Below, piece after piece: positions 1-52,879 of a DNA stretch of 64,000 bases. The DNA lies in the NCBI RefSeq assembly GCF_000150275.1, contig NW_002060980.1:158962-222961 (forward strand). The letters are read 5' to 3'. The position numbers and the translations under genes were made by a program. Position 1 is the first letter of the stretch; each line of letters begins with the position of its first letter. The notes below the pieces were generated by a model. It was not told the DNA's origin. It made no database searches and saw only the letters and a list, made by a program, of their open reading frames with translations. Origin of the DNA: Trichoplax adhaerens. Lineage: Eukaryota; Animalia; Placozoa.

Positions 1-1901
1 ATGGCATACAACACAATTGGTAAAATAGTACAAGGGTCACTTCCAGTACCGAAACGATTGGTTAAGCTGAATTTTACTAAACTTTACAATGTCAGCAGTG
101 ACGAAATTTTATCTCCAAAATCGGGCTATATGAATATTTCAGATTGGTGTATAGGAAATATCATAGGCTCAAAAGCTCTCCATGTAGCACCGTGCACAAT
201 TAGTGGTAAGTTCTTGATTTTATTATAGATTCAATATTACAAATTCAATACTACTGTAGTTACGTTATATATACGTGACATATATAACGTATTTTTGCGG
301 TTTGTTGATTTTAATTCTTAATTTTATTGTAGATTCAATGTTATAAATTCAACACAGATATAGTTACATTATACATAGATAAAATATTTTGGCCGTTTGT
401 TGAATTTTATTTTTGATTTTACTACAGATTCAATATTATAAGTTCAATACAGATAGAGTTACATTATACATGCGTGACATATTTTTGCCATTTATTGATT
501 TTCGTTGATGTATGCCATTACTTGCAACCTGTATATATATACAATCCAAATTCAATTGGTTTTTTTCCATTGCTGAAAGATACTTGCTGGACAGGCATTA
601 CCAACTACCATGGAGGTTATTATGGAATCACACATCAATTGATAACTATTCTCAATGGCCAGCGATTGAATTGCACAGAGAAAATGAATAAATTAGCTAA
701 AAACTTAGGAGGAATTCAAAAAGTAAAAGAAGTACTATGTACTCAAATTTATTATCAAATGCAGAAAGAATTAAAGAAAGGATTGAAGAATATCCAGATG
801 CAGGATCTATTTCTAGAACAAATTTTTGTATGTGGAGGCTGGATTGGCTATCAACAATTTCTGAAAGCACAATATTTATCGATGATGTTAAAATGGCAAA
901 CTAAAGCAGGCTGCTTTATACCATATTATGGTCCATTTATTAGTTTGCACCCCAAATTCAATAAAAAGTATGTTGCTACTATATTAAAATAGCTAATACT
1001 ATCACACTAGCCATAAATTATATCGAATTAAAGTAGGGATGATTACTATAAATTTTCAATCATAAGAACTAACATATGTCAAGTATTAAAAACTTATAAC
1101 GAGTCCTTTATTATATAATGTTGCATAGTTATACTCGAGATAGCAGCCAATATTCTTCTGCAACTGATGAACTACGAACAAATCTGATTACACCAGGTAA
1201 AATTAGACTAGGAAAATTACAGCTTTTTCTCTTTAACTATTGATATGTAACGCGTTTAAATTAGTATTATCTATGAAAATTTCTGTAGAATTGAATTGCG
1301 AGTTTTGTAATTAAATTTTCATGATATTATAGCTTTTGTTTAGATTTACTATAGTTATTATTTGTGCTATTTAACTGATTTGCTTAGCATATCAGCACGC
1401 TGGCCATTTTAAATAATACTAGATCTTGTATAACATCCTTCAACCCCACTAAATAGAGTATATTATGAATTAGGCAGGCATATCGCTAGTAATTGCATAT
1501 GATCATTTAGTATTAATATTAGGAGCCATAAATTTTATATTGTTAGCACAATATGCTATAGAAAGATATCTTAAATTAGTATTGTAAATGATTATGTTTC
1601 TTCCTTTCAAAAATTCTAGATGGTTGTTATGAACATAGAACTTCAGTAGCTTTGATTGATGTATCGATATATTTATATTGGAATTCGCATAAAAAGCAAT
1701 CATTGCATTTATCAACTATGACTACATTGACATCGACAAGATACAAGTAGTAGGAGGCTATTTCTAGCATTTACTGTATTTGGAATCATTGCAATTGGAT
1801 TAGCGGTCATTATGGTCTTCGTTATTATTTTAACCATGTACTATATATGCCCCTTTCGTGGTAAAGCCTATCCTTATCATAAACTTAACTATGAAGAATA
1901 A
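1..1901 (+). CDS. UPF0764/C16orf89-like protein, copy 1 (5' end outside window; frameshift before the TM segment)
   Basis: Exons <1-205, 580-967, 1129-1196, 1620-. GT-AG introns. Family motifs SDxC..IIG..PC, YxITHQL, LCxQIY, QDLFLEQ..CGG, KWQ..GCF, DGC..H. In-frame TAG at 1748-1750; the TM plus YHKL tail lies in a shifted frame ending at 1901. Confidence 0.85.
226..520. repeat. ~100 bp x3 tandem repeat in intron of copy 1
   Basis: Units starting (t/c)agattcaat.ttat/c.aa.ttcaa...gttac.ttata at ~226, ~330, ~425. Confidence 0.8.
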
Positions 1902-3877
1902 AATTTACTAGTGGCAAGGGAAATTAAGGCTGTAATTAATAAGTATTAGCTTCTCATATATCGATCGTGGTTCACTGTAGTTAATGAAATTGAATATATA
2001 GAAAAGGATGCAATTTACCGGATTCAGTTATTATCATTTTCTATATCAAGACCTTTTACATGTATTATTGACAAGGATAATTAATTCTAAAACTAATTTT
2101 GTAATTGCTATACATAAATATGACTCTCTATTCAAGGTATATTTAAACCTGTTTAAATTGTTACGATACGGATTAATTTGTACCAAAACGAAATAAATTT
2201 AAATGTGAAGAATAGCTGGCACAATTAATTACTTTTAAAACTTTTGGATATGAATTAAGTTATAAGACTTTAATTTCTTACATATAATATGTTAAATATT
2301 ATCCTATTGGATTGATGTTACACTTTCAACCACTAATATGGAGATAGGAATAGCACTTATTCATTTGAAACAATTCTATTTCTCACTAAATAACAATATC
2401 GTCAGACCGTATTTAATTGACATTTTATTTATGTACTGTAGCGCAAGATATCTAATGTTTATATCGTTTCCATCGATTTACACTTACTTAAATGTTTACC
2501 TATAATCTAACTGTCAGTCAATATTATCTATTTAATTAAGCAGCATGCAATACTTTATCAAGGCAGTTGGAATAGCGATGTTTATTCATAGTAATCTAAG
2601 TAGTCTATTTATTAAAGCCTTCCCTTGACAATTTGTCCTTCTATGACATTGATATCATGTCCAATAAATTAATCCTTTTAAGCGAAGAGATTTTCTTTCG
2701 CAATCATGAGTGATTGCGAGGGTTTATTGATAGTTATGATACTGGATAACTCCGTAAATAGCAATTATTAATACGAGTAAAACTTTTTCTTCTTTAGCCA
2801 GTTTGGTAAGCCAATATGAAGTATGTACAATTGATTTATATATCAATTCTAAATGACAAATTAAATACTTATAGTAGGATAGAACCTGATGGCTCATGGT
2901 AAAAGGACGTGTGATTCATAAAATAGACTTTTCGAATTTGTAATTGAACCGTATCTTATGGTCGATATTTGATCGATTACCAAGTACAGCTGAAAGTTGC
3001 GCCAGCATTTTACACTAGAATGGAATAATTCAACTGGTGCCAATAAAATCATTCAAGGATTAGGCTTGATATCGATGATAATTAATCGACGTTAAAAAGT
3101 ACTTGAATTATTTATTAATATCACGTGAACATGCTATTAATATTAGCTAATGAATAGTTACAAATAAAATTGATATAAGAAGAATAAAAGCTGGAACAGA
3201 ATTGTTGGTTTAACAATTGAAGAATTACTTATAGGGAGAATAAAAGTTTTAGGGTATTATTCGTGATTGAATACGTTAATTAAAATAAGATGCCCTTCGG
3301 CTAATTCTTCATTAATAAAATCTTTATGAATAGTTTTCATTCAGTATAAAGTAGAAGACTAATTGTTATCCTATATACCGATTATAATACTGTCTTACTT
3401 TTGTATGTCTTCAATAATTAGATCAAAAGCTCGTTACAATTATCTGAATATCAATTTATCTAGCACGATAGTTATTCCATCTACGACCCATTTCGATTAA
3501 CTTTTGATCAACACCACCTGTCGATAGTTAGCTTTCCTGGTACATCATCTTCTGCTAAAATGTACCTATAGCAATAAAATACTTTAAATAGCTTGATGTG
3601 TCTATGGAGTACATAATACACTCATAGTTTTATGATCTTATAGTTTACAGTTCGATAGTGTAAGTTACAGCTACCAACGTTGTTGGATCGTTCTCACATT
3701 CCGTAAACTTCCAAAGATAGCCAACTCCTACGGAAGGTATGGTGTCGTATCTTGGTAGATTAGACTTTTACATGATTAATTAGATATGCATCTTAATATT
3801 ATCTAAAAACTTCAATTTCATTTATTAGTAATAATTCATACAAAGTAACTTGAAACTTGTATTCTCCCCAAAATTAG

Positions 3878-6800
3878 ATGAATATCAAGAAATCAACAAC
3901 GATAATTGGCATAAATTTACTTTTTTTGCTGTTTTTGGCTGTTCATATCGCTAACACAGACGCTGCAACTTTTGTAAAAAGTTATCATTATCCTATTCCA
4001 GCTAATGATCAAATAATTAAATCATTAGAAGGATTGATTTACTACTACGAGAAACATTATCAATCCATCATATTTGACGCGTATTATGGACTCATCAGAA
4101 GCGAAGGTATTATTTCAATCTTTAAATTGATAGTTATCTAGCTAGTAGCACGGATCTGGCAAACAAATGTATGAAAATTGAAGGTGTTTTAAATTATAAT
4201 GACGAAAAGTTTACTCTTTCTAACGATCCTACGTAATATTATATAGTTAATTACTGCTATATATTTATTAAGATTAACACAGGAATTGATATTTTGACCC
4301 TCAATTAAATAATTTTAATAACTTGTCGATATCAAATCAATTTAGTACTGGTATATGATTGTAGTAAATACGTTTAGTTATATTGTTAGTCGTAAACATC
4401 GTAAACACTTTGCAAGTAAACTATTATCAAGACGATTGTAATCGTAGTCTCCATGGAATTAGAGTACAGTTTCAAATCCATAGTGAGTGGTTTAGAAAAC
4501 TAACATCAAGCTAAAATGGTAGAAAATCGTAAATCCATAGGGATTATTTATGTAAATTTACCTTAGACTAAGTCATACCTCCTTTATTTAGGCTACTAAA
4601 AGTGGTAAAAGCATATAATGTAAGTTTTACAGTGTCAGTTTTCGTATGGTTTTAAGTTAGAATCATTAACGCATGTAAAATTAATCGTAACCAGCTTACC
4701 GTAATATAACTAAATCAGCAAAAAATTACTTACTGCGTGAAACGTTGTTCTAAATTTTCTCGCTTTTCTTAGTAGTTAACATGTAAAGGATTGCATTATC
4801 AGCTACCGAATACAGAGACACTAATGAATAATAATTAAAATGATTAGTAACTCAGTGAATTTTGCAAGAAAATTTCTATGATAGATGAAAGACAGCTGAC
4901 TTAACGCTGACTCCAATGGTATATAAACGATATTGAAGATAAATCGTTATCATCTAGCTTGTAATGAAATTAGTCACCGATATACTCTTATTCAAGACTA
5001 AGAGGGCCATAAAGTCCTGAAATATAACTGCATCAGTTTTAAAATACACTTTAGAGCAATATAATTGAATCACCTTCGCTCATTCATACTAACTAAAATG
5101 GATAAAAATCATTTCTGACTATTACTGTACAGTATCCTTGTTATACGTGTATTAAAATAATTCATTTGGATTTTGCACATAATGCGTATTCGCAAAAGTT
5201 AGATTTTTATTGATTAAGCGTTTATGAAAATACAGTATACAGTATCACTGGTTCGCCATAATCCTTCTTCAATAGTACTTTTATCGTGTATAGTCGAAAA
5301 TGTTATCTATCGCCAAATCTTTAACAAATAAACTAAAATATTTATTTAAATTTTGTGATAATACAGCATGAACTATACAGAAGATATACAGGCACTGATT
5401 ATATAATTGTAGTTACTCAATGATGAATGATGGCACAGGAAACTTCTGCATAAAGTATGGGTGTAATCCAGTAGTACTATTAAATTATTGTAAAAAATTG
5501 CCATAGACATCCCAAATTGTTCTACCGAACTCCGTACGATAATCATCTTTCATTAAATTATTACTCTACCTATTTTTGGTTCATTTATGATAGTTATTTA
5601 CTGTTAATACTCATTTCGATTGGACAGAATCATGGACTACTAGATTTATCCATGATGTGTCTAGTTAGGTAGTCCATGACAGAACCATCCAGAATTCCTA
5701 ATGCATCATTGGTAAAATTACAAATTTCAAATTTTTACTGGTACATATTTATAGTATTTCAGCAAAGCGATCAACGTATATGGGATCGATTGGCATCGTT
5801 CTTAGCATTCGTTAAGAATCATTTAGAAACAATCACCAAAGATGATAAAAATTTGTTACCAGTTTACGAAATTACCCCATGTTTCCGTATTTCGTTAACA
5901 TCTTTCATTTCACTTGATCCTCTTGTAAGAGATGTGTATTAACTAGTTATAATTTAGATATAGTATAACAGTTTCAAAAGCCTTCAGTAAAGGTCAATTT
6001 TCATCCTACTTTTTGTAATATAAGTATAAGCTCGTATATTGAAATTTAAAATCTTACTATGCTCGATTTAACCTTAAGAATTCTGTTTATTCTTCCTTAA
6101 AACATGGAACACCTTGAACAAAATTTTAAATCATCATAAAATATTTTATTTTTGAAGATTTTATACTAGCTACCATTAAGGATTATCGTAATGGAGTGTC
6201 AACGTTAAATCCTCAACAAATTAACCGTGTGGAGCGAATTTATAACAGGATCGTGGCTGTATCAAAACGAATTAAACCAATATTAGCAAATAATTCCACT
6301 CCGTATTCTAGTCTTCAAAAAATCGTACAGAAACCAGTTCCGGTAGCTAAACAACTGGTTAAGCTAGATTTTACTGAACTCTATAATGTCAGCAGCGATG
6401 AAACGTTATCCGAATTTTCGGGTTATATGAACATTTCAGATATATGTATAATGTCCATTATAGGCTCGAAAAAGGTCCATCTGCCCGTATGCACGATAAG
6501 TGGTAAATTTTTGATATCATTTGTAAATTAAACATAGCTGTAGACACCTACATAAAATAATCTTACATTTCTTCTACTTCTTGTCAGCTTTGAAATAAGC
6601 GTAAATAAAAACAGTTTAATTAAACTTTACGTAAATCTAAACTCAAATTGATTTTCATTGATGAAGATACTTGCTGGGCAGGGATTACCAACTATCACAG
6701 TGGCTATTATAGTATCACTCATCAATTGCTAACAATTTTCCATGGCCAACAATTGAACTGTACCGATAAATTGAACAAATTAGCTAAAAATTCAGGAGGA

Positions 6801-8345
6801 ATTCAAAGAGTGAAACAAATATTATGCACTCAGGTTTATCATCAAATGCAAAAGGAATTAAAGAAAGGCCTAAAAAATATCCAGATACAGGATCTGTTTT
6901 TAGAACAAATTTTCGTATGTGGAGGTTTGGGTGGTTACGAGCAATTTTTAAAACCACAATATTTATCGATGATTTTAAAATGGCAAACGAAAGACGGATG
7001 TTTTACTCCATATTATGGTCCATTCGTCAGTTTACATCCTAAATTTATCGTAAAGTATGCCATTATTAGGGTGATAGTATTTAAATTAATATTTAAATTA
7101 GCATAGATCATATCAGCTTTGATAAGTACTAAATCCGACTTTCTGCGTAAAGTGATGTAAATTTTCTTTCTTGTAAACTAATACATGTTGACTATTGCAA
7201 TATCGTGATAAAGAATCATCCATTATACTTCTTTTTCATAGTCGCACTAGAAATGCTGGCCATTATTTATCGTCATCCCATCAATTACGGACAAACCTGA
7301 TTACACCAGGTAGAAATTTGTTGCTATTAATCATTGAACTAGATCTCGATACGAAATATAGAAAGATGATGTGAACCTTTAGTCAATTTGTGTTATTTAG
7401 CTTACTGAATCAAAGATATACCTGCTAACTGTATTATTTAAGTCTCTTACTTAATCATATGCCGTCATGATAATAATTATTTAATAATATATTAGCAACT
7501 GTTATTTAATCCTCATTCTAATAGGTAAGCTACCTGTGAGCAATATCGAGTTAGTATAGTTTGTCACAAGTAATTAGGTCTCGATATAGTATGATGAGGT
7601 GAATCCTTTTGTCAGTTTGAGTTATTTAGGTTACTGAATCAAAGATATTGTAGCTCTTAACTACATTATTTAACTTTTTACTTAATCTATCGTCACAATA
7701 GTTATTTGACGTCATATTAGCAAATATTATTTAGTATTCAGTTCTAGCAGATAGGTTACGTATGATTAATATTGAGTTCGTGTAGTTTTGTCTCTAGTAA
7801 TTTTATATTACTCAATAGGAACTGAAGAGACAGATAACACATTATGCCGCATTAAAAAATACTATTCAATCTTAAATTCTAATGGCTATATTGAAATATA
7901 CTGAATTAGTAGAGTTTATTACAAGTAATTTTATATACTTATAGTGCATTAGAAGCAATAGCATACTTTATACTTTTAATTTAATGTGGTATGGTCTAAA
8001 ATGATATTCTAGATTACCATAGCAATTTCTCTGCTTATTTTTTTTACAAAAATCGTAGATGGTTGCTATCAGCATAGAACTTCAATAGCGTTTGGCTTAA
8101 TATCAGTATATTTATACTGGAATTCTCTTAGCAATCAATCGCCTCATTTATTAACAACGACAATGTTAACGAATGCAAGTCCGAAGTGGGTGTCTGTGTC
8201 TATTACTATACATATAATTGATAGCATTGCTATTGGATTTGGCCTTGTTGTAATAATGATCATAATTTCAACAGTAATAATGTATTTCCTTTTCTCTCGC
8301 CATCGACGAAGACATGTTTATCGAAAACTTAGTACTAACGAATAA
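3878..8345 (+). CDS. UPF0764/C16orf89-like type-I membrane protein, copy 2
   Basis: Exons 3878-4106, 6158-6502, 6667-7054, 7242-7309, 8059-8345, in frame (intron phases 1,1,2,1). Signal peptide, family motifs, C-terminal TM and YRKL tail. Closest paralog of copy 1. Confidence 0.9.
7341..7800. repeat. ~235 bp direct tandem duplication in intron 4 of copy 2
   Basis: ag.tctcgata...gtgaa.c.tt..gtca.tttg.gttatttag.ttactgaatcaaagatat occurs at ~7341 and ~7577, with similarity continuing through both units. Confidence 0.75.
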
Positions 8346-10175: not shown

Positions 10176-12725
10176 ATGGATATTAAGAAAAAAAGAACAT
10201 TTAAAATCTCACTGGTGTCTTTTACTCCTCTTCTCCTTGCCTTACCTATTTTTTCGGTTGCAGTAAGTAATACTATCACCAGCAGCTCTTACTCTCCTCC
10301 AACTTATAATCAAATGATGCATGCCTTAGAAAATTTACTTCAATACTATGAAAGGAATGCTGAACATATTATCGTAGATGCCTACTATGGATTAAAAGTT
10401 ACAACCGGTAAGTAGGATTTGTAACTACTGTACTGTACTTCAATCACTGTTTGTATCGTAATCAGCAAAGAGAAAATATGAAAAAGCTTCATATCGAAAA
10501 ATGCTTGATAATATCGATGGACGCCATGACCTTTAACTATACCCTAAGCTGTGACAAAGTGTTAACTCTAAGTATAATACTTTATATCCATGTGTTTAAC
10601 AATTTAACTATTACACATTATTGCATGTTTAGGATACTTACATGACCGTTATGTCGTTCATCTAGTTTTTGATATTCTGTAAAAGCTTGAGATAACTGTA
10701 ACTGATCATTGCATCTTAACACCTTGCTACGATGTTTGACGATAACATTGACGTCGTAATGGGGCTAGCTTAAAATTGTCATCTATAGTCATTATTTAGA
10801 CAACTTTACTGCATTTCTCGCACTTAAATTCTAAAAGGTATCATTACCTGCAAGCCGATTTAATATTATTGTACTTATATGAGAATTGCAAGCATTTTAA
10901 TATTTAACCAATAATCATTTAGAAGGGCTATAAGAATCTCTTAACGTATAAAATGTAATCTTGTAATAGCTAATGATACTTTTATTGTCTATTCATCAAT
11001 CCGACATGTAGCATTAATCCAACAGACTATTCACAGCTATGAGAATGGAAAATCGAAACTGGAAGAGAAACAAATTGATCGTCTTAAACAAATTTATCAA
11101 GATGCCCTCCGAATTTCAAAGCGAATCGAAGAAACATCAGGGCGTAATTCTTCAGCATATATGAAGCATAGTAAAATGCTACATACATCTTTCCCATTCC
11201 CTGAACGATTAGCCAAGTTAGAGTTGGTCAAAGATACTCCTAATAATAGTGGCAATAGTTCCATAGATTTTATTAAAATATCTGATCAGTGCTTGTGGGA
11301 TATGATGGGTGGAGGACTACGTCATCCACCAGTTTGTACAATTAACGGTAAGTCATTTATTGGGCGTAATAATATTTTACTATACCTATTGAGTCAATTT
11401 AGTTCGCAATTTCAAAATGCTCGTACGACTCTATAGTCTATCTATGCTATACTAATATATCTACGTATAAAAGATTAATTGAAACGAAGTAACCGAATTT
11501 ACTGCTCTGTTACACACTGTTAAAGATTCTTGCTGGCGTGGACTGACGGATTTTAGTACAGAGGGCTACATAATAACTCATCAATTTTTATTAATATTTG
11601 TTGGTGAGCAATTTAACTGTACTGAGAAAATGAATCAACTCAGCCAAAATTTAGGTGGAATTGAAAAAGTAAAACAGGCTCTGTGTACTCGTATTTACTA
11701 TCAAATGACGAAAGCTTTAGAAAAAGGTTTAGTTACTGGAAAGATGCAAGATTTATTCATAGAGCAGATCTATATCTGTGGAGGTACTGGTGGCTACCAG
11801 CAGTTCCTTCGTCCTGAATTTTTATCTATGATCCTAAAATGGCGAACCAAAGATGGATGTTTCTCGCCCTACCATGGACAATATATTAGTTTACACCCCA
11901 AATTGGCTAGGAAGTAGGTTATCTATTAGCCATAAATTATGAAACAATAGTATCTAAAAAATAGCATTGCTATTCTAGTATTGGTTTACGGAGAACTCTT
12001 TAATAAATTAAAATCCTATTAAAAATTGAAATGTAACATTTGCTAACGATGCATAACTTGCATTTCTTCTACCAAAAGTAGCGGTGGCATAAGTGACATC
12101 TATCATCTTAGGAAAACCCGAAAGCTACTAGCTAATCTAATTTCACCAGGTAATACAGATACAGCTTTATCATTTATTATCCGCCTATATGAAGTGGCGA
12201 TCTAAAAATGAATTTTTTACTATTAATTCGTTATTCTATTTACACCATATCGTTATTAGTCAGTCTTTTAATTATATAATTACATAAGTACTACATAGGT
12301 TACAATGTGACTGATTCGATAATTATCAATAACTAAGGGTAAAATGTATTTCTATTAAACAGCGAATACTAGTATTTATCTTTCATTTAGTAGTATCTAA
12401 CCTTTGAAACCTATGCTTCCATTTAATTATAGATGGATGCCATGAACATATGACGGCTTTAGCAATGATTGATATCGCTCTATATTTACGTTGGCTTTCG
12501 TTCCGGGAGCAATTACTAACAACCACTTTTACTTCAGTTACAGACGTGAGCAAATCTATTTCAGTAACAAGCATAAGCAAATCTGCTTCTTTATCACCAG
12601 GCATTGTAGCTGGTATCGTTATTACCATTGTAGTCATTGCTGTCATTATTTCACTACTATTCGTTTACTTTGCTAATCCTTTCCATCGCGAAAGACAAGG
12701 CTATCGAGTTATCAGTTCAAGATAG
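10176..12725 (+). CDS. UPF0764/C16orf89-like type-I membrane protein, copy 3
   Basis: Exons 10176-10407, 11012-11347, 11526-11913, 12079-12149, 12433-12725. Same intron phases as copy 2. S/T-rich stalk, TM, GYRVI tail. Confidence 0.9.
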
Positions 12726-15596: not shown

Positions 15597-18195
15597 ATGG
15601 TAAGAGCGTTTAAACTTTTTCCCGATTTCGTTCTTATATTAACTTTACTTATTAGGCAAAATCAATGTGCTCACATCGATTATGATCGAATGATTTACGC
15701 CATCGAAGGTCTGGCTGACTATTACAGCGCAATCAAGCAAGAGATAATCATTGATAGTACCTTGTCATTTCATTTTACTAAAGGTAAGATCCTAGTAATA
15801 TACAAAAGGCGAATCCGAGAGATAATTTAAGTTCAAACTCTGAACTGGCTAAATTTTCACAAGATCACGACAGTTAATGATAGAGAAAATATGTATAAAA
15901 ATGATTCGATTAACGTTGGTAGAATTGTGTTTGCTGTTAGAATGTTCCTGTATTCTGTTATTTTATTGTCGAATACAGATTAGGTTACCATTTTTAGATT
16001 AACTGACTTCAATTTACCTCGTAGAATGCAAAATGTCCTTTGACAAGTCTTTTATTAGTCTAAATAAAATTCCCTTACTGAATTATTATTAGCTTGCTTG
16101 CCTCCTAAATCTTTTTGTAGATAGCGACTATACGTTATGAAATAGATAAACTATTGTAATATAAGATAGAAATATAGGTATTATGTTAGTGAATGTCACA
16201 TAGGATGTTGCTTTAATTTATACTATAAAATTGTCATCAAATTTGCTAGGGTACTTAAGAACCATTTTAGAAGATGCATCTAGAAATGAATCGTTATTAA
16301 GTCATAATCAATTGGATCGTGTGACAAAATTATACGATAGGTTTAGAGGATTGATAGAAGATACTGCACCCACTATCAGCCAAAAACACTACCAGTATAA
16401 ATTTCTGATACCGCTTTACGTTAGAAATTTTAAAGTCCCACGAAAATTACGAAAGCTTAATCACACCTATGTACAGCAAAGCCAAGAACATTCAGTGTCT
16501 CGTCATTATTCCAATCAATGCTTATGGGAGATAGTTGGATCCTGGCCATATTATAGACGACCATGTAATTTATCAGGTGATTCTTGACCGTACTAATCTT
16601 AAATTGGTTACGAAAGTCTGTAAGCTTATGAAAGCAATTTACCATTATCTAAAAAGGATTGGACTATGTTAAAAATGCAATATAATGTTCCCAATCAATA
16701 GCATGCAACATGCCCATACTTGTGCTATGTTCTCGATTTATTTATTTTTATGTGTTGCATCATGGTTACATACGTATACTGTACGTATAGTTGTATACTG
16801 TATCTGGTTCTTATAGACGTATAGTTCATATAAATTATGACAACTAAGTAATAGTTCTATTTGATTCTTTGATTTGTTCCAGATATTTGCGTCAAGTTTA
16901 TTTCTCAGTTACACAGCAACAATTATATAATTACACATCAAGTATTGGCATTATCATTTGGTCGCCAATTCCACTGTCAACATCAGATTGCCCCCTTATC
17001 TTCAGCTTTTGGCAGTGTTGGTAATCTAGAGGCTATTCTATGCTCAAGAGTACATAAAGAAATGTACAGCTCTCTGTATAAAGGCCTAACTAATTTAAAA
17101 TTACAAGATTTATTCACTGAACAGGTCGATGTATGTGGCTCTTTAGAATTTTTCGAAGATTTTATTAATGAAACATACGTTGACATGGTGTTAGAGTGGC
17201 AAACAACTCAAGGCTGCTATATGCAATATAATGGAACTTACACATCCATATTTCCTAATGAGAGGTACTATTATCTTTTTGTATTGCTAAATTTATTTTG
17301 AATTATAAATGGTAACTGCTACTGGTATATAATTAAGACGAAAATCTCCATCAACTTTAAAGTAGAGAAGTAAGGTATCCTATTTCGTAATAGTCCAGTC
17401 TTTCGAAGAATTGATATTGACAACAAATGCCGTTCTATCAGCATAATTATCTACGGTTGGCGACTAGTTTACTGTTCTATTAATATGGCAGATATTTTAT
17501 TTTATATTACTTACATTTGAACATTATATATTGAGAGAGCACAGTGCCATCGATGTGGTTATGTTAACAGTAGCTTAATCATTTAATGATAAAAAGTTAG
17601 AAAAGTGGTAACATAATGAATTGATATAGTTACTTGATCTTCTTTACATGATTTAACTGAATCCTAGTAACGGCACCAAGTTAGCGCCATACTATTCACG
17701 AAGCAAACGAAGCGATAGCACTGGAACAGGTATTTGAAAGTAAAGTACTTGCGTCATTTAAAGTTTAAATGGATTTTAGCTAATGTGATATTATTACTTA
17801 CAGTTACTCAGAAATATCGTCATCCGTTACATCATAATTCTTCACTTAGAATAGTAAAATTTATAAGCTTTCCGCAATAGAAATTAATTGAATGCCTAAC
17901 TTTCTATTACAAAAGGTATATTATTGACTCGAATTTCGATTGTTTTATTTAAGATGGTTGTCATCAGCATATCTCCTCTACAGCTACTGTGTTGATTGTT
18001 GCTCATTTGCGTTGGTTAACTTTAAAGGGTGAACATAGTCAAGCAAGTGGAGCCAGTGGAAAATTAGTACCAAATTACATTCTGGCAGTGGTATTAATAA
18101 TAATTATGGCTTCTGGTGTAGGAAGTGTCATCTTTTTATATATCAAACGAACAATTAAGAGGAGGCACTATCATCTGGTTAAGCAACAAGAATGA
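15597..18195 (+). CDS. UPF0764/C16orf89-like type-I membrane protein, copy 4
   Basis: Exons 15597-15783, 16250-16576, 16883-17264, 17668-17729, 17954-18195. Motifs YIITHQ, QDLFTEQ..CG, EWQ..GCY; RSKR in exon 4; TM and YHLV tail. Confidence 0.9.
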
Positions 18196-21037
18196 AATTA
18201 CTTTTAACGTATAGGAAGGAATAAACGGCAATACATGAATAATAAATTACTGCATGACACTATGCTGCTTGAAGTTACTGAATAAGCAAAAGGGTAGTTA
18301 ATGCGACGGTCATACATGTCGTTCCATGTCGAAGATAATTATTATTTTGCTGCCAATTGATAGAACAAGTATATTGTTAATCATTGTAATGTAATCATTT
18401 CACTGACACAACGTGTACCATACAGTATAATGTATATTGTCCAACAAGGAAAATTCAAAACAGGATTAGCGATTTTAGTTATCAGGTTTCATTTAGAAGA
18501 TAAAGCACTACAGTAAATGGGTATTTACTTACTTGGAACGCTATGTACGTCGGGTGAGACGATAGTATCTTAGCCTATAGAATATCCATACGCGCAATAT
18601 GCGATTCTGCGATGACATTGTAAGATAATTTACTAGTCTGGTTCGGATGCTGTATTGGAAGTGTTTTTAATAGGCTCGTATAATAAGACGACAAATAAAT
18701 TCCCATTATGAATTAATTATGAATTAGGATATGATTTTTAATCGTCATTTCCCTGCCATGGTATGGCTCAATTACAGTGCACGTGTACTGAAACGCTATC
18801 TGTCCAGTACTTCCGCATTGGAAAGATTTACAAGTAGGAAACTCTGCCTTAATATATAAACTTGACTTCACTGTGCAGATAGGCAACATTTTTAACCCTG
18901 TGTCTAGTGTAACAATGTCATGAATCGGCTCTGATACTTAATTTCATAAGTTCTACATCTATAATTTGGAAACGTCATAATGCAATTAATGGAATTATTG
19001 AAATTGTTAACTAATTTGGAAGCAGTTGAATGCCAGTAAGTCAATGAAATAGACAAGTTTAAGCAGTTTTGTAACGACCTGTATTAGTATGATAGACACA
19101 ACACCTACATATGAGGATATTACATGAAATAAAGTACAGTTGTCAGAATAGTTTCTTGTGAACGAAATACCAAAAAATGCGTTCGAAAAAGATTCGCGAT
19201 TAGATAAGTTATCGATGGATGCGAGACTTGCAAGTATTAATGTAGGTAGACGCATTGATATCAAAAATGTGTAATTAGGAAAAATATCTCCCTCAGATCG
19301 TGTTAATGTCTTGGCAACATAGGATTGTATTTAAAATTGGCACTTTATCACAGTAAAGTCATGAAGAATTTCCTCTAAGAAGTCCCTGATTTATTGTCTA
19401 TTCATGAGGCAGCCTTTGATGAAGTGAGTTGTAGCAAGTTAGTGATAGTTGTCCTTTTTTTTCTCTAGCGCACGTGCACCATTCTATCCGTAGTAAATAT
19501 TTGAATTTGTATTTTTGTACCTTGCTTACTCAGAATAATAAAGTACAATTCATGATTTATATATAACTTGTATCGCATTTTGGGATAAAATGAATATGGT
19601 ACAGAGAGTCATACTGAATAGTACTTGTATATTGCAGGTGAGGTTAATATTTTTACGTATCGTGTTTCACATTTTTCCGTGATATTGTTCTATCCGATTT
19701 TGCACAAAGCATTACTTTACCGAAGATTGAATTTGTAAATCAGATATTTCGGTGCAGTATATCAATTTATTGCGCTGTTTGGCTACTTAGGCTAGCCAAG
19801 ATGATGGACGCCTAAATACACTATATGTAATTATATAATTTAATTACTCATGCAATTTGACGGTATTGCTTGGACTGTGAAATTCTATTCTTCCATGACT
19901 GAGGTAATATACACTCACTTCGATTATATTATAACTATGTTTTCATACATAGTCATAAGAAGAGTTTTATTGCCAATCAATATACCAGTCCTTTGTGGAA
20001 ATGAGCCATTTTTTTATTGCAAAGAAGTACCTTGAAACAAGAGGTGATTTCTAAACAAATACCACGGGAAAAATTACAAGCTGCGGGAAAATCCACGCGT
20101 GTGCCCAAGTGAGCACACACTATGGGTTTTGATTGGGACACAATTGGTTGTTAACTGTCATTAGGGCTGTCAGAGTTTGGGCTTTCGATTTTAATCTCTT
20201 GCGTGCTTTTCAATAAATGGAATACCCCCAACAACCAGCAATGACTTTTTTTTTTATCTCCAGCGTCTGTACCGTACACAGTCGATAAGATATTCATCGA
20301 TCCATAAAGGCGAAGGTACGATAAGGTAGACTACCAATGACTGCAGTATCCGTGAGAAGGGTAATTGACTGAGGACTAGAAGATGCAATTTTTACCAATG
20401 GTAACTCATGATCGTATTTGAAATGGTCCTAATTCAGTAAGCATTTCCAGCGATGACAGAATTGATAGAAGCCATCTTTCAGTCCTTGCTCAAGTTGAGC
20501 ACTAGCAAATTTGTATACTACTCCTAGCAAAGAAAGCAAAATGATTTCATTGCTGTGTGCTTTCGTATGCTAGTTGAAGAGTATTTTGTAATGTTGTTAT
20601 CGTCCCAATGCTGTCCGGTCAGTACGATAGCCTCGGTCATGCATAGTAAGCAATCAGTCGTAATAGCCTATCGTAGGTCAAGATCCGACGACGCTTTCAA
20701 GGTACAATACAGGCGATAATGTTTATCGTTGAAGATTGCGTTATTCTATCGACACCCACTTACTGATACCAACTGATACAGGTGAAAATCTCTATCCCAG
20801 GTACGCCCATGACAGTCCCCAATCATGCGTACAACGTCAGATACCGTCGCTATCTGACGTTTTTGTTGATCTACTGGACTGCCTTGAAAGATAGCGTCAA
20901 TTGCGTCTAGCCTGAGGTGAATAAACTGACGGTATAAATACGAGCGTGATTGAAGGTGAAGGGATCCATGCTTCAAGTGCGCTATTGGTTACGCGTCGTG
21001 ATTGCTCGAATTGCAAAGTGGGAAGCTTGCGTTGGGA

Positions 21038-25329: not shown

Positions 25330-27050
25330 GTTAAGTTATTTACTTACATTTAGGTGCAGTTCGTGGTAGCAAATAAATAGAGTTATACCAATGTATTTAC
25401 TCCCAATAAGGCGATATAATTATACAGTCATCATCAAAGTTGATGAATATCATTCAAATTTATCAAGCAAATTCAATCATCGACGATAAGTTTAATTTAG
25501 TTTTCAGCTTTTGCAAACCATAATCCTACAATTCGTAGTAATTCTGAATTTGAATAAATTGTATGGGTAAATGAAGTAGTGAAAGATTTGATTTCAATGG
25601 TGCTTAGATTCAGCCCTTTAAAAAATGATATTAATGGAATATAGCCGGATAACGTCATGACGGCTTTGATTTCGATGATGTTTAGTTTCAGCTCTTTGAA
25701 AAAATCATATCATTCCGTCATTTTTTAACCTATTCTAGTCAGATAGTTCATTGAATACTTTGACTTCAAGGATGCTAAGTTGCAACCCTATTAGAAAAAT
25801 TACATAATCCTTTTCAGTTACCATACTTCTTAATGTAATACTTGTATAGTCCGATAACGTAATGAATGCTTACTTTTAGTCCCTAGAAGAAATCATAACA
25901 TTCCTTCATTTACTAATCAAATAGAGTAGGATATAGAAGTCAATGCTTTGATTTCAATGGTGCTTATTTTTAGCTCTTCGAAAAATCACATAATCCCCTT
26001 CATTGACTCTAATTCTTATTGCAATGCCGTTGGATAACGCAATAAATGCTTAATTTACCGTCATTCTTAGCCGATGAGAATTATGGTCAGATAACGTATT
26101 GAATACTTTAACTTTCAACCATGCTAAGCTGCAGCCCATATGGAAAATTATAGTACATAATTCCTTTCACTTAATATAATTCTTAAATGTAAATATAGTC
26201 GAATAGCGCAATAAATCATTTTGATTGTAATGATGCTTAGTTTCAGGCCTTTATAAAAATCATATCATTCCTTCATTGGCCATTATTCTTATGGAATATG
26301 GCAGGATAGCATAATGATCAGTGGATCCTTTAATTTCAATAACATTTATTTTCAGCTCTTTGAAAAACCACATAATCCCTTTCATTTATTGTAATTTTTA
26401 ATGTACTGTAATAGTGTAGGATAACGCAATAAATGCTTAGATTTCAATGGTGCTCAGTTTCAGCCTTTTGAAAAAAATCATATTATTTTTTCTATTTACT
26501 ATAATTGTTAATCTGGAATGATCAGATACTGTAATAAGTATGTTAGCTTCAATTATTGCTCACTTTTAGCCCTGTGAAAATCATACTATCCCTTCTATTG
26601 ACCATAATTTTAGTTTAAAGAGTCAGACAGAGCGAACAAGGCTTTCCTTTAAAATTACGCTAATCCCTCACTTGTTAGCTTCGGCTCTTGGAAAACTTAC
26701 CTACCCAGTAATGTGCTTATTGACTGCCATTCCTAATCGAATGGGGTTAGATAGCACAACGAATCAATTTCATATAGATTTACCTTCTCTTGCACTAAAT
26801 TGGAGAGTAGAGTAGAAATAGCCTCTTGCTGATAAATATGGTGATATGCGACTGCATAGTCAGTAGGATTACTTTACTACTGGACTGACGTAAATCCATG
26901 TGCTCATAGCAGACAGATAATATCATACATCTTGGCATTTCGTTCTGCGATACAACTACGACATTTCTATAATCCATTTGAATCAAGAAACAATAATCAT
27001 TGGTATACCAATAAAACTACCACGATGAACAATCCAAGATACTCGATGAT
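25330..27050 (-). pseudogene. Possible decayed LRR-like surface protein gene
   Basis: The minus strand reads a hydrophobic leader (YLGLFIVVVLLVY), a Cys cap-like segment CRSC...IIC...GFTSV, then repeats such as LKLSTIEI*AFIALS, LKISTIEIKAL and LQLSILEVKVFNELS. Many stops and frameshifts. Confidence 0.35.
25580..26700. repeat. Degenerate ~105-110 bp tandem repeat (~10 units) with a ~350 bp higher-order duplication
   Basis: Recurring gatttcaatg.tgctta.tttcagc.ct..gaaaaatca.at.at.cc at ~25590, 25668, 25762, 25950, 26110, 26223, 26332, 26440, 26546. Confidence 0.8.
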
Positions 27051-27699
27051 GTATGTGCACCGTGAAAGCAGCAGCAATAACCCGCTTCAAGGTAGGACCA
27101 CGGTAGAGCATGGAAAGCTAGAATTTTTTCTTGGTCGATGGTTCGATTGAATAGAGTGTAGTCGTAGATAGCTAGCATCGAAGTCTACCACGGAATAGAA
27201 ATATCACCGATTCAATGATGAATTACATATCATATCGCCTGTCATTAATGGGGTTGAGTTTTATTATGTCGATGCAAATAATTTGGAATCTGTATTAACT
27301 TGAGAAAACTCAACCACTTTTTAGCTCGTCCAGCCTTAATTTTGACACGTGCTTTCCTTATATCGATTCAGAGCAAGGCTGATTAGTTCCAACATAGACT
27401 AAAAATACCGGTGTTTTAGTAGCTCATGGTTGCGATAAAAAGGAAAAGAATTTTGTAAATTATTGTTGTGCCTATGGCATAGATAAATATTAATTATTTC
27501 ATTCTAAGCTAGGCCTATTTTCTACACATATTTGTTTAAATGAAGGAAGTTGTTGTAGTCGTGAAAATAATATCGTTAGCTATAATCAACAAATACTACT
27601 AGTAACAGTATTGACCGTACTTTATTCATCAATAACATGCTTAGCACTATATAGATCTGTCGCAACTATTTGTTGTTGAGCAAACATACCATCATCCGG

Positions 27700-29040
27700 C
27701 CCTTGTATATTTTACCTAAATTAGACCCCGTGGATATCGACTGGTTAAGCTATCGATTGCAAGATAGCAAGCATAGCGAATGAGATGATGACCTATGCGT
27801 ATATTTGCATCAATGCTAGTTGCTATTTTGACATGTTAATTCGAAGTTATCAGACCAGTTTGTATGGGAGATTGTAGGGAGTTGGCATACGTTAGATTCC
27901 TATCCTTGCCAAATCTTAGGTAAAGTAAAATGGGATTTATACACGTATATACCTCATGCTTTATAGTGAAAGAGATGACTTAAATTGAAAGATTCAAATA
28001 AAGAAGCGCTCGGTATGAAATGATGGAAAAACTTTCACCCTGACATTCTTCATGGTAACTTGGATAACTGAACAAAATATGCATTGCTATTCTTTGTTGA
28101 AAATCAATATTTTTTAAATTGAAAAATTTTATTACTGTATTAGTATTATACTATTGTACTTTGTAGGAAAATAATTTTCACTGACATTAGTAAGAGTGCA
28201 ATCATTCAATAAACAGAGTAGAATCTTTTTATTAAAATTAGAAATGGCATGATCATTGACCTAAGAAATTATAAAATATTTTACCTTATATTATAATCTT
28301 GAATGATTAGGAAAAAGATCGCAGTAAATATTCATAACAGCTTTTTTAAGCGATAAGTCGGTGTTTATAGTCGGTATGATTGGGATTAATATCGTGGTTA
28401 TTGAGTCTAATTTGCAATGGAATAGTACTATGAAAGAAATACTTTTTCGATTTTCATTAATGATAATTTCGATTTCGTTGTATCACAATTTAATAATAAT
28501 ATAAGCATTCTATTGAAAAATCGTCCAGAAATAAAGTTATTCGGTGAAATACATAATAATACGTTTATAAATCATAATCAATTAGAATGCTTATTGCTAA
28601 GATTAGTGCATGCCGTACATCGCTGAATTTCGAAAGTAGCAAGAAATTATACATGTACAATTTTTTATGATATTGTTACTGTAGATTTATTGCTTTGATA
28701 TTCTATATTAACTATAAGATTCATTGTGTAATACTAATACATAAATTCTTAAAATTGTTCTAGATGGCGGTTACTAACATTTATCTGCCTTAGTGACAAG
28801 CAACATTGCAGCCTACATTAGATGGTCGTCATCAAAATCTCGTCGCGAAGTAAAAACCATATCTACTCCACACCCTGAATCTAAGTCGCTACCATTTGGT
28901 GTAGTAATCGCATTCATTAGCGTAGGAGCAGCTATAGCATGTACCTTAGCAATTGGAAACGACTATTACGCATACTCAATTAATTAAAGAGCCCAGAATG
29001 GAGTGGTTACTATCCCATAAAACCTACTGAAGATCAATAA
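27700..29040 (+). pseudogene. UPF0764/C16orf89-like pseudogene (copy 5, most like copy 4)
   Basis: SDQFVWEIVGSWHTLDSYPCQIL with a donor after 27919 matches exon 2 of copy 4. The last exon from 28764 reads DGGY*HLSAL..YIRW.., then a TM and an out-of-frame GYYPI tail. No large exon 3 was found. Confidence 0.75.
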
Positions 29041-29728
29041 TATTGTTGTTGTGAAAAGTTATTTTCGATCTGATATACTAAATTTACTCACGTATTGATA
29101 ATGCTATGTTGTATTTTAATGTTTAAATTATCTAAAGCTAAATATATATATATGTAAATTCGGGTACTAGATACCAATACTGTATTAGGTGTAAAGAGGA
29201 ATATTAAATTATGGTGTAGTCATAATTTGATTTATTCTTTCTATATAAATGACGGAGTATCAAGAATATGCTACGTTCTTACAGTATATTATAACATTGC
29301 AATATCTGATGTGCCATGATAAGAAAAATAGTTAGTCATTAATGTAATTCTTTACACAGGAAATTTTTATTCACAGGTATAAACTTTTACACCGTAGTCA
29401 ATGAATGAATAGTAGTAGTAGTAGTGTGATTTTGTTGCCGCAAGGATTGTACACCATCGTTACTTCAAAGGTTCACTACGAGTAGTGTTGTCTAAATATG
29501 TACCAAATATATATGGCATATAGATAAACAACAGGGCATAAACTTCATCAAATTGCCCTAATAGCAACCTCAAACAACAATCAATATACATAAAAAGTTA
29601 AGCTTTACACCCGATGCTACATATACAAATATACTTTAACATCGCGAGTTGACGAAAATTGCACTTAGTAATATACGTAATCGAAGAGCATCATCCTATA
29701 ATGTGCTCAACTTATTCTTAATACTGAA

Positions 29729-46908: not shown

Positions 46909-47084
46909 GATACGAGCACTTTTACTTGATGCTTTGAGGCTGCTTCTAAAGTTGTGGCGATTTGAGAGCGGAGCTCTCTTACTGCACGCTTTACTATCAT
47001 CTATCTACACTATGCACTGTGCAGTACGTCCAGTAATACAGCACAGTAGAGTAATGGAGCTTGTCTAGGCGCGACCTGCTTGTC

Positions 47085-47235
47085 CAAGAAACTACAGTAC
47101 TGTACTGTAGGTCTAGTGACGTAAAATATTATACTGTACTGTACTGCACAGTACAGTACAGTACTGCAGTACAGTATAAGTACTGTAGTAAAAGTACTGT
47201 ACAGTACAGTACTTTTGTACAGCATACAGTACACG
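47085..47235. promoter_or_regulatory. TACTG/CAGTA pentamer array upstream of ATM
   Basis: Dense tactgtac/gtacagta units in both orientations ~180-330 bp upstream of the ATM ATG. The regulatory role is inferred from position. Confidence 0.55.
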
Positions 47236-49324: not shown

Positions 49325-52300
49325 TTATAATTCATCATATTTACGCTTTTTAAAACGTGGATAAATAATAAAGCCAGCAATGGCACCAAGAACGACAACC
49401 AACAAAAGACAAACAATAACAAATGCATATACTAGACCGTTGTTGCTTTTAGGAGCTGTTGTCGGGTGTGGTATTCCAATGTGTTTAAAGCTCCACCATC
49501 GTAAAGATGTTGCCAGTGAGGCGAAAGCAACGGTAGAAACATGTAAGTTACACTCATCTAGAAAAATTGAAGATATTTATTAGAAAGCATTATAAATACT
49601 ATTAATATCATCATTGGAGTAACATCAATTACAGGCTAATGGTCTGCTTGTTATCAATAAAGTTAAAACCGTGATATCATGTAAGCTAACCGTATACTGT
49701 AGCAATAATTAACGCACTTCCAAGATACATAAGAATAGAAAATAATTGATTATTTATTGGCTGCAATTACGAAAGTACCGTAGACAGAAAGTTTTAGTTC
49801 ATATTCAATAATTTCGAGACTTCAGAAATAGATATTTGATTGCAAACTATTTCCATGAATCTATTTAATTTTATGGTAGAATAACTTTAACATGAAGTTA
49901 TTCTACAATATAATAGCTACAATACTCTTCGATACCGTTGTATTCTAAATTACCTGATGCAAGATCCGCCCTTGAGTTAATTAGTTCTAACGATGAAGAT
50001 ATTTGAACGCTATTGTATAAACATAACATGCAGGGTAAGTGCATTATTCTTATAATATAAAATAGGTTGTTAAGATAGAATTTTATAACGGTATTTTATT
50101 AAGATACACACTAAAGGCACCCGTAGTATGGTACTTCATACAGCGAGTACAACAAAGTTGAGCAAATCCATTGATATAGAATCAACTAATAATGCATTCG
50201 TTCGAAATATTATTGCATTAATTATCTTATGCCATTGAAACATTTACCTCTGTGATCTTCGATTACGAGCGGAGTTTTTGAAGCATCCGCTTCTTGCTTG
50301 ATACTTGAAAACTTGATGCAATGGATAAATGCTAACAAATTCAACATATCCAAACATTCCACCACATATAATGATTTGTTGTAGTAGTAATTCAGCTTTA
50401 TTTATATCAGAAATGTTATTATGTAGAATTTTTTTAAAGTCCATATAAATTCTAGAACATAAACTCTCTTCTACCGCCATCAGACGACGTATTCCACCAG
50501 CTAATTTAACTAATTTAAATCCACAATAATCAAGCTGACGAATGAAATAATCCGTATAAAGTTGACTGACAGCTAAACCCATTCTTGTTCCTGGTTGTGA
50601 AATGTAATTCCAACAAGCCTCTGTCGTATTAAAATAAAAAGATAAGATTAATTAAGGTTACAATATGAAATATTACATATGCATATAATGAAAAAATAGG
50701 AGCGTTAATTCAGTTGAGTTGGTTAAACTTATAAATACTGAAATATAAAAATAAATCATTTAAATTCTAATAATTTGATGGATTTGATGTTAACGAACAG
50801 ATTATAGCTGTATGATCATTTTAATGAATGTTATGGTAGTAGTTCAAAATGTTCATTGGATACTTTATCATTTACTGTACAGCTGATTCAAAAGTACGTT
50901 ACTTAATTAGGACATTGACGGATGGTATTAAGGCATTGGTCAAGACATGAAAGCTTCTTTTTTAACTTATAAAAACATTTTCCTGGCTGCTACTTTGTTA
51001 CGGAATGAATTATCTAAGCACTGCATATCCTGTATTGATTCTGGCTAAAAACGGAAAGCGTGATAGCAATTATTTAAAGATGCTCAAGGATTGTAAATAT
51101 ATAACATAATCGCATTTTTCATCGATAGGGTCATTGATGATTATGGAACATTAAATACCATAATTTTTAACAAACATTTTTGTGAATTGATTGTTTTTCT
51201 GTCGATTAATGATAATAGAGCTCAAGAGTCAATTTCATAATTGAACTTAACCTACAGTAACGCTAATTTTAGACAGCAATAAGCTAAATAATAAGGAAAA
51301 CCGATAAGGGAATTATAAAGATTTGGCGTTTGTTTATTAAATATCGGGAGTCATTGTGATAGCAATCTCTAGAGTAACGTTTAGTCGATCACCCTTAAAT
51401 CTAGAAATATGTTTAACTTCAATTCGTGAACGAAGATAATAATAGTCATCGAATAGAAGAACAAAAGCTGGCAAATCTCATTCATACTTTTGTGTATGAA
51501 TTATGTTCTATACTGTACAATCGTACTGAAATTTCGAGCAGATCATCTTTATTACTCTAGATCTTTAAAAAGGCAATTTAATGGTGATCATTATTAGATG
51601 AATATAAAATCTTACAGATATTATCTTATATTCCGTACCATACCTGTTACATTGCAACTAGCGGAGCCGATACTGCCGCTAAGTGTAGTGGCGATACAAA
51701 TTTCAGACATATTAGATGGAAACGTATTAGCTGGAGTCGGTCCTGAAATAGGAAGAGATGGTTTTGTGCCATTGATATAACGCGCTACGGCAGCAAAGGA
51801 CACTTCTTCACTAAATACTAATCGATATTCAGGTGAAAATTTTTCCAGCGAATTTTGGAATAGAATGTTTACCGCTACATTCATTTCACTGATTCGCTTA
51901 ACATCTTGTGAAGATAAATATGAATTTTCCAGGAAGTACTCTTTCGTTATATCTCTGAAAGCACCTGAAATGAGTAATTCGAATCTCCCATTAAACAAGT
52001 TTTCCGTATTCGGAATACACAATAGTTAGCACAGCATATTGCTAAGTTAAAACGTTATCATCAAAGGAGTAACGACCAGTTTTATTGTTACGTTTACAAT
52101 ATATAAACGTAAAATCGTAATACTCTAACCTACGACAGCATTTTAACTATGTGTTCGGTAGTTTCTTAAAACATATGTATCATAAGAGCCTTCTAATTGT
52201 CAGTCAGAGTGTATCAGAGGTGTAGTTTAGGTAATGACAATAGTTTTAAAATTTTCATTTATTTTTAGTGGCTTAAATGTATACGATGATTAAATCTTAA

Positions 52301-52879
52301 CGTAAATCTTAGTATTATACTTGTTTATTACTAGTTAGTGATTAATAATAGGTGTAAGAAACTGACTGCATTGATCGTCTAATAGTATAAATATTATATC
52401 TGCACAAGTAACGTAACGCTATCTGCTTTCACTGGTAGCAGAGACTTTTCACTACTATGTCTATAAAGATCAAGTGGAGAGTTATTATAAGTGAAGGTTG
52501 AAAAAGTTATATTATCATTTATACTCAATCTCTCAAATGTATACAAGCGAAATTTCAAACCTTTTCGTTAATTTAATAGCTTGATAAAATTCAGAAATAT
52601 GCAAGAAAATTAACAAAAATAAAAGAGTGAACTCTCGCTTTAAAATTAGTAACCAGCTTAGTACTTACTTATTGCTATCAATAAGTTGTAAGCATCCAAC
52701 CATTTTAAATTTGCCCTTTCCTTCTTAATATATTTTAATAATTCTTGCTCTGCCCTGATGGTATGGTTAAAACTTTCTTTTCTAGGATCTATCGATGCTG
52801 AAATAGATTTAATACCAGCGATATTATCGAATGAAAGAGATGAAATTATAAGGATCCAGATCAACTTTTGCAATTCCAT
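49325..52879 (-). CDS. UPF0764/C16orf89-like type-I membrane protein, divergent copy 6
   Basis: Exons 52879-52669, 51964-51644, 50620-50248, 50009-49954, 49557-49325. Same intron phases as copies 2-4. Signal peptide, LCSRIY, ICGG, GCF, RNRR, DEC..H, TM, ends KRKYDEL*. Confidence 0.85.

Follow-up and report, generated by a model that had tools for sequence, protein, structure and literature searches.

Tandem and dispersed DUF4735 genes of Trichoplax adhaerens encode predicted membrane-anchored C16orf89-like proteins with YxxPhi tails

What does an array of C16orf89-like genes do in one of the simplest animals, and what sets these genes apart from the same family elsewhere? The question is raised by a 64-kb stretch of the Trichoplax adhaerens genome (the window; all of it was analyzed), which contains six copies related to C16orf89 and carrying the Pfam domain DUF4735 (PF15882). 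Four of them look intact (G2, G3, G4 and G6), one is frameshifted (G1) and one is a pseudogene (G5). The intact copies are predicted to encode an ectodomain, a stalk, a single transmembrane (TM) helix and a very short cytosolic tail with a tyrosine-based motif, Y-x-x-hydrophobic (YxxPhi). The family itself is already known and anchored members are already present in public databases, with no paper on them found. What is new here is a lineage-specific expansion combined with a standard sorting motif; the annotation is well supported, the mechanism is hypothetical, and this is not a new kind of system.

The number of copies agrees with the six paralogs of the original prediction: tblastn with open reading frames (ORFs) of exons found five clear copies, and a permissive search together with six-frame reading added the pseudogene. 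The genes of the window were searched one exon at a time. Both large exons of each copy match the DUF4735 profile with E-values of 1e-13 to 1e-46 and 50–158 bits, far above the cut-off of 31.2, so the HMMER check confirms the proposed assignment to C16orf89/UPF0764. G2, G3, G4 and G6 share five exons, the intron positions and the intron phases 1,1,2,1, with GT-AG at all 16 junctions, exactly the layout that had been described. In every copy, exon 1 encodes an initial Met and basic residues followed by a hydrophobic segment 15–20 residues long, a start that looks signal-like by inspection. Exon 4, found in every paralog, is small (18–22 codons) and ends in a C-A-G/G-T donor. The first part of the last exon encodes the helix that completes the domain (C-x-x-H-x-T ... 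L-x-x-Y-L-R-W; positions 260–283 of the Pfam profile). With no stop, the frame then runs on through a stalk that is short or S/T-rich, a hydrophobic segment ~21–28 residues long, a basic cluster and finally the tyrosine motif. Two database proteins, TRIADDRAFT_60908 (P0129) and TrispH2_010435 (P0161), match the exons of the genome and the window one by one at 97–100% identity, which confirms that the DNA is from Trichoplax adhaerens. P0161, from Trichoplax sp. H2, equals our G6 model at every residue across all five exons, and P0129, the model of another paralog, contains the TM exon. A word search of the mixed alignment returned P0129 and P0161 only, and no models of G2–G4 were found among database entries of 242–771 amino acids.

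The arrangement of residues around the hydrophobic stretch suggests how these proteins would sit in the membrane. Eight conserved cysteines and four to seven N-glycosylation sequons precede it, and a basic tail follows. Because an even number of conserved cysteines and all of these sequons lie before the TM helix and the basic cluster lies behind it, we infer a type I orientation, and the intact genes are predicted to encode type I membrane glycoproteins. The order of stalk, TM helix, basic stretch and YxxPhi motif given in the original prediction matches this layout. Since the last helix of the domain (predicted local distance difference test, pLDDT, >90) shares one open frame and one exon with the TM helix and tail, the anchor could not be skipped without breaking the fold.

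This exon arrangement bears on the possibility that the TM exon goes unused in most transcripts and that the products are mainly secreted, as in vertebrate C16orf89. The DUF4735 family may switch between anchored and soluble forms by splicing in other animals: the Dreissena polymorpha gene LOC127871388 is annotated with an anchored isoform of 604 amino acids (P0156) and a soluble isoform of 433 amino acids (P0009), and isoforms in Schistosoma japonicum likewise differ in the presence of the TM helix. Within Trichoplax, the frameshift in G1 would yield a soluble product that ends in the stalk, and the public model of the paralog on C1403 (P0001) ends inside its last intron. Against secretion, the last helix and the anchor are encoded together with no stop in between, and a complete soluble domain would need an unusual internal splice or a cleavage; the TM helix and tail are moreover conserved in orthologs, and the end of P0001 is a simple read-through of a GT donor. 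We therefore regard predominantly secreted products as very unlikely.

The two Trichoplax genes cited in favor of secretion can be described more closely. In G1, a single 1-nt shift in the stalk (window ~1700–1745) separates the frame of the domain helix from that of the TM helix and the YHKL motif; it is the sole visible defect, and a co-ortholog from another placozoan (L012) is in frame. If the shift is real, it could produce a secreted protein that stops just past the domain, a natural conversion from anchored to soluble form; the alternative is an assembly error. The C1403 paralog comprises only three exons and has the top Pfam score in the genome. Its public model ignores the last GT donor and ends within the following intron, with the TM exon coming 133 bp later; this is probably an annotation artefact. 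We rejected a full-length soluble read-through ending for the large exon of this gene: at the DNA level there is a GT donor in phase 1, the C-x-x-H exon is preceded by the usual acceptor, and the extension is intron.

To place the window in its genomic context, the whole assembly was searched in six frames with Pfam, which returned 21 DUF4735 exon matches at 11 loci; a TM-encoding last exon is present at 11 of 11. The genome holds 12 DUF4735 loci altogether, seven of them in or just upstream of the window. The array continues past the window start with an extra tandem copy, G0, ~5.5 kb upstream of G1. In a tree built on the large exon (119 columns; its deeper branching order is not firm), nine Trichoplax paralogs, namely G0–G4 and the copies at 13 kb on C1377 and on C1397, C1394 and C1398, form one clade with a Shimodaira–Hasegawa-like approximate likelihood ratio test (SH-aLRT) support of 95. 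The C1403 copy joins its ortholog from other placozoan DNA, and G6 forms a long branch of uncertain placement. The pseudogene G5 is colinear over ~2.4 kb with the intact copy on C1398 (L006), at ~67–87% nucleotide identity. Its large exon 3 is missing, as is the greater part of exon 2, and in the last exon a stop codon in frame and a frameshift come before GYYPI. Birth-and-death evolution, as had been proposed for this family, fits the combination of a tandem array with dispersed copies inside the clade, one decayed copy and one frameshifted copy.

The cytosolic tails, 10–22 residues long, consist of a basic cluster followed by Y-x-x-hydrophobic. The six motifs named in the original prediction (YHKL, out of frame; YRKL; GYRVI; YHLV; GYYPI in the pseudogene; and YDEL) all lie where it had put them, and the Trichoplax set reads YQKV, YHKL, YRKL, YRVI, YHLV, YDEL, YSRI, YRRL, YQKL and YLRI. 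YxxPhi occurs in 10 of the 11 tails encoded genome-wide, compared with a mean of 2.1 in composition-preserving shuffles; none of 20,000 shuffles reached 10, a count that is not in itself a probability because the paralogs have a common ancestry. The tyrosine occupies the same alignment column in nine of ten aligned sequences, the exception being the C1394 copy, which reads S-R-K-L. For the C-terminal Y-D-E-L of G6, we rejected an endoplasmic reticulum retrieval signal of the dilysine or KDEL type: by inspection, the sequence is on the cytosolic side and has no lysine at –3.

Common ancestry could also mean that the motif is a functionless relic inherited from one ancestor, and that these proteins act like the anchored DUF4735 proteins of other invertebrates. 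All copies go back to few ancestors, which makes the counts non-independent, and the anchored homologs of other animals do without YxxPhi. Comparison with other placozoan DNA, drawn from an ENA metagenome and from Logan assemblies of SRR30664515-17 and SRR6854575, points the other way. Last exons differ considerably between placozoan lineages (54–85% protein identity), yet the tyrosine and the hydrophobic residue at +3 are kept in each ortholog pair seen. The paired motifs are YHLV/YHVL, YSRI/YTRI and GYLRI/GYYSI, plus a YQVL copy, and neighboring residues vary. The tails of the G4 pair have only ~6 of 16 residues identical, and the ortholog (L018) nevertheless retains YHVL. The 11-residue tail of G6 is unchanged in two other placozoan lineages: its 11 codons contain five synonymous and no non-synonymous differences, as against 18 and 12 elsewhere in that exon, a sample too small for significance alone. 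Conservation between orthologs is a stronger argument for the motif than the number of paralogs that carry it. Given also a motif frequency far above that of composition-matched shuffles, we consider a functionless relic quite unlikely. Two marine metagenome contigs, L008 and L009 (ERZ23499115 and ERZ27263980), are clear placozoan orthologs of G6, with ~75–80% nucleotide identity in exons, and indicate that environmental data contain usable placozoan genomic DNA.

Is the membrane anchor itself peculiar to placozoans? The near-intronless C1403 exon was used as the query for a HMMER search of 1.84 billion representatives, which yielded 182 matches, and the best 150 of the 182 were examined. Among the 150 matches listed, ~30 have a C-terminal TM helix followed by a basic tail of 11–22 residues. 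Of the non-placozoan representatives whose C-terminus is complete, roughly one in four shares this combination of TM helix and short basic tail. By source name, the anchored homologs come from a sponge (Oscarella), flatworms (Schistosoma, Paragonimus, Calicophoron), a mollusc (Haliotis), a brachiopod (Lingula), an annelid (Owenia), a crustacean (Homarus), a crinoid (Antedon), hemichordates (Saccoglossus, Glandiceps), amphioxus (Branchiostoma) and a tunicate (Styela), with soluble forms in Nematostella, several gastropods and Dicrocoelium. On the large-exon tree, the TM state changes only eight times among 131 scored rows. Because a C-terminal TM helix with a basic tail occurs from sponge to amphioxus, predicted anchoring is an old or recurrent trait of the family and not a placozoan novelty.

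This outcome divides what the original prediction had claimed as lineage-specific. Membrane anchoring does not distinguish the Trichoplax genes, and the part of the claim that concerned the anchor is not supported; the expansion and the YxxPhi motif stand, with a canonical YxxPhi at +5 or later in only four of 28 non-placozoan TM tails, which is about chance level. The survey also speaks to whether TM helix and motif together are the general state among invertebrate homologs: the helix is widespread and the motif is not. Judged from these sequences, the features specific to placozoans are confined to the YxxPhi tail and the number of copies. Some of the foreign tails have features of their own. 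The long non-placozoan forms P0014 (from the mollusc Haliotis), P0018, P0022, P0031, P0041, P0062 and P0137, of 620–850 amino acids, share a strikingly conserved tail in which basic residues are followed by I-R-Y-H-P-R; its tyrosine lies ~12 residues past the membrane and has no hydrophobic residue at +3. In the tail of the sponge Oscarella, a tyrosine is found at +8.

The predicted structure of the ectodomain offers a view of what the tail would carry. AlphaFold models were built for P0161 (identical to G6) with an alignment of 150 homologs and for an anchored amphioxus homolog, P0010, with 100. They reached pLDDT values of 85 and 86 and predicted template modeling scores (pTM) of 0.78 and 0.79. 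In a structural search, the top 50 rows for both models consisted exclusively of (alpha/alpha)6 toroids: glycoside hydrolase (GH) families GH9, GH88/GH105 and GH76, 2-epimerases, class II terpene cyclases, LanC-type cyclases, thioester domains and cobalamin carriers. Z-scores peaked at 13.7 (root-mean-square deviation, rmsd, of 4.9 across 256 residues) and 14.6 (rmsd of 4.5 across 259 residues). Assigning the ectodomain to the (alpha/alpha)6 toroids is a reasonable reading of the models because the list of neighbors is uniform and coverage of the domain is near-complete; no subfamily stands out. A Pfam tally over 100 homologs and the ESM Atlas gave no link to a characterized family, and we do not class these genes as glycosidases because no sequence or profile relation to a characterized glycosidase family was detected.

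Within the domain, eight cysteines and a polar set of Tyr, His, Asp, Glu, Gln and the Cys-x-x-His of the last helix are 87–99% conserved across 150 homologs. The polar motifs read G-Y-x-L-T-H-Q, D-L-F-x-E-Q-x-x-x-C-G, W-Q-x-x-x-G-C and C-x-x-H-x-T, with positions conserved at 90% or more. The full set is found in G0, G1, G2 and G4 and in the copies at L002 and L005, and G3 and L006 differ at one position each. This is the pattern of a disulfide-stabilized domain with a putative binding or catalytic pocket. Because most paralogs keep the near-invariant polar set, the toroid is probably still functional; it would bind or process the ligand of the family, plausibly a glycan or a lipid, and its activity would face the cell surface or the endolysosomal lumen.

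Taking anchor, tail and ectodomain together, we lean toward a reading in which the YxxPhi tail makes these proteins cycle between the surface and endosomes and/or reach lysosomes, and we give it somewhat more credence than doubt. The tail would be recognized by mu subunits of clathrin adaptor complexes, and mu-homology domain genes are present at several loci in the Trichoplax genome. Such recognition would lead to uptake of the proteins from the surface and/or their passage to late endosomes and lysosomes, in the manner of LAMP, CD63 and TGN38. In general terms, LAMP1/2, CD63, TGN38 and lysosomal acid phosphatase resemble the Trichoplax proteins in having a very short tail, a basic stretch and a Y-x-x-hydrophobic motif near the membrane and the C-terminus; their luminal domains are unrelated, and the likeness is one of working principle only. 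The Trichoplax motif lies 6–10 residues past the first charged residue behind the TM helix in eight of ten tails and 0–4 residues from the C-terminus in eight of ten. For the candidate role in digestion or microbe recognition named in the original prediction, these sequences offer neither support nor contradiction.

Several observations weigh against this reading. The paralog on C1394 (L005) lacks the tyrosine, and the motifs of G0 and L003 sit 15–16 residues into the tail. GYxxPhi is typical of lysosomal signals, and a glycine precedes the tyrosine in only three motifs (G3, L006 and the pseudogene G5), plus L014, the ortholog of L006. The Z-scores of the fold are at a level that helical repeats alone can give, and neither Foldseek against the PDB (E ≤0.001) nor a PDB sequence profile linked the domain to a characterized family, hence no activity can be named. 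G6, L003 (on C1403) and L004 (on C1397) lack two to four of the polar residues. The topology rests on hydropathy, the distribution of cysteines and sequons and the positive-inside tail; no RNA-derived contig was found, and it is the gene models and the content of the TM exon that speak for its use in mature transcripts. Finally, YxxPhi is short, and it could have another reader, such as an SH2 or PTB domain, or none.

A different reader is the core of a further alternative, in which the proteins are stable at the surface or shed, the tail tyrosine is phosphorylated as an SH2/PTB signaling site resembling half of an immunoreceptor tyrosine-based activation or inhibitory motif (ITAM/ITIM), and the family is a set of receptors. 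YxxL/I is the ITAM/ITIM core as well; the expansion, the divergent ectodomains and the incomplete polar sets of G6, L003 and L004 would suit binding receptors, and S/T-rich stalks would permit shedding. The geometry of the tails argues otherwise: they span just 10–22 residues, and in most of them the one motif lies near the membrane as well as near the C-terminus, a spacing that is generally typical of sorting signals and unusually tight for access by a kinase or SH2 domain. The tails contain no second motif or docking region. We judge a signaling receptor set improbable and continue to favor endocytic or lysosomal sorting.

How do these genes relate to the rest of the family? Vertebrate C16orf89 has the same domain, the eight-cysteine framework, the conserved motifs and an N-terminal signal-like segment, and its function is likewise unassigned; the papers found on it go no further than expression enriched in thyroid and lung and its presence in body fluids. 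The Trichoplax genes differ from it in adding stalk, TM helix and cytosolic tail to what is taken to be a protein with no TM helix, and in numbering about a dozen paralogs rather than one gene. No vertebrate sequences were among the matches listed. Closer in plan are the anchored homologs from Oscarella, Schistosoma, Haliotis, Lingula, Owenia, Homarus, Antedon, Saccoglossus, Branchiostoma and Styela, with a signal-like start, the same domain, a linker, a single C-terminal TM helix and a short basic tail. They differ in that YxxPhi is rare, many linkers extend over several hundred residues, and the lophotrochozoan long forms have instead the conserved basic tail with Tyr followed by H-P-R; as far as the sampled records show, other invertebrates usually have single or few copies per genome. 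The anchored form is widespread from sponges to amphioxus and hence probably old. The (alpha/alpha)6 toroid enzymes and binders (GH9, GH88/GH105, GH76, N-acylglucosamine 2-epimerase, class II terpene cyclases, LanC, thioester domains and transcobalamin) match the predicted fold over 200–260 residues with Z 10–14.6, a likeness drawn from predicted models, and have no detectable sequence relationship to DUF4735. Literature searches for the DUF4735 domain, Trichoplax C16orf89 or the gene identifiers found no paper.

All of these strands could be joined in a bolder proposal. DUF4735 might be an unrecognized metazoan family of ecto- or endolysosomal enzymes with a toroid fold, ancestrally type I, whose Tyr/His/Asp/Glu/Gln/Cys-His active site would act on glycans or lipids; in placozoans, which digest food following endocytic uptake, its copies would have multiplied and gained a tyrosine tail of the LAMP type for endolysosomal routing, and vertebrate C16orf89 would be a secreted derivative. 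As a whole, this proposal is unlikely. The narrower results have uses of their own. C16orf89/DUF4735, a conserved animal family of unassigned function, gains a predicted alpha/alpha toroid with near-invariant polar residues, and it is the fold prediction and the evidence for a widespread anchor that are of more general bearing. Should the tail act as supposed, the Trichoplax genes would be handy as markers and cargo of the endolysosomal pathway in an animal that is among the simplest, and their ectodomains form a natural panel of variants for finding the ligand or substrate of the family.

The coordinates of the features are collected in Table 1. An ORF at 5673–5939 was considered as an additional exon of G2 and rejected: it has no paralog or Pfam match, and exons 1 and 2 join in phase without it.

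Table 1. DUF4735 gene copies and other features in and around the window (positions refer to the window unless a contig or locus is named)
Feature	Position	Strand	Description
Window	G000:C1377:158962-222961		Trichoplax adhaerens; ~30-36% G+C; ORFs broken up by introns
G1	1..1901	+	Truncated by window start; exon 2 1-205, exon 3 ~580-967, exon 4 1129-1196, exon 5 1619-1901; basis: tblastn against paralogs, ORF pieces
G1 exon 1	L001 7513-7749		Upstream of window
G2	3878..8345	+	Intact, 5 exons, predicted 434 amino acids; 3878-4106, 6170-6502, 6667-7054, 7242-7309, 8059-8345; Pfam DUF4735 E 6e-46 and 3e-13
G2 last exon	8059..8345	+	Final domain helix (C-x-x-H), S/T-rich stalk, TM, basic stretch, YRKL 4 residues from C-terminus
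G3	10176..12725	+	Intact, 5 exons, predicted 438 amino acids; 10176-10407, 11012-11347, 11526-11913, 12082-12149, 12433-12725; tail GYRVI
G4	15597..18195	+	Intact, 5 exons, predicted 399 amino acids; 15597-15783, 16250-16576, 16883-17264, 17668-17729, 17954-18195; tail YHLV
G5	~26733..29137	+	Pseudogene, colinear with intact C1398 copy (L006); last-exon remnant 28763-29030
G6	49325..52879	-	Intact, 5 exons, 397 amino acids; 52879-52669, 51964-51644, 50620-50248, 50009-49954, 49557-49325; tail end YDEL
DUF4735 copy outside array	C1377, 12.7-13.8 kb		
DUF4735 copy outside array	C1403 (L003 3591-4117)	-	
DUF4735 copy outside array	C1397 (L004)		
DUF4735 copy outside array	C1394 (L005)		
DUF4735 copy outside array	C1398 (L006)		
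DM domain exon	21002-21265	+	Pfam E 1.6e-14
ATM-like gene	29729 to ~48000	-	FAT, PI3/PI4-kinase and FATC domains
Exons of YIF1-family gene and PAP2-superfamily gene	58198-58413 and 61802-62362	+ and -	Downstream of G6

No transfer RNA genes were detected across the 64-kb window. Other genes interrupt and flank the DUF4735 copies. An exon encoding a DM (doublesex/mab-3) DNA-binding domain lies between G4 and G5. Between G5 and G6 is a gene for an ATM-like phosphatidylinositol 3-kinase-related kinase (PIKK) that includes one exon of 798 codons; the corresponding model in Trichoplax sp. H2 has 3114 amino acids and includes a TAN domain. Downstream of G6, exons of a YIF1-family gene and of a PAP2-superfamily gene follow.

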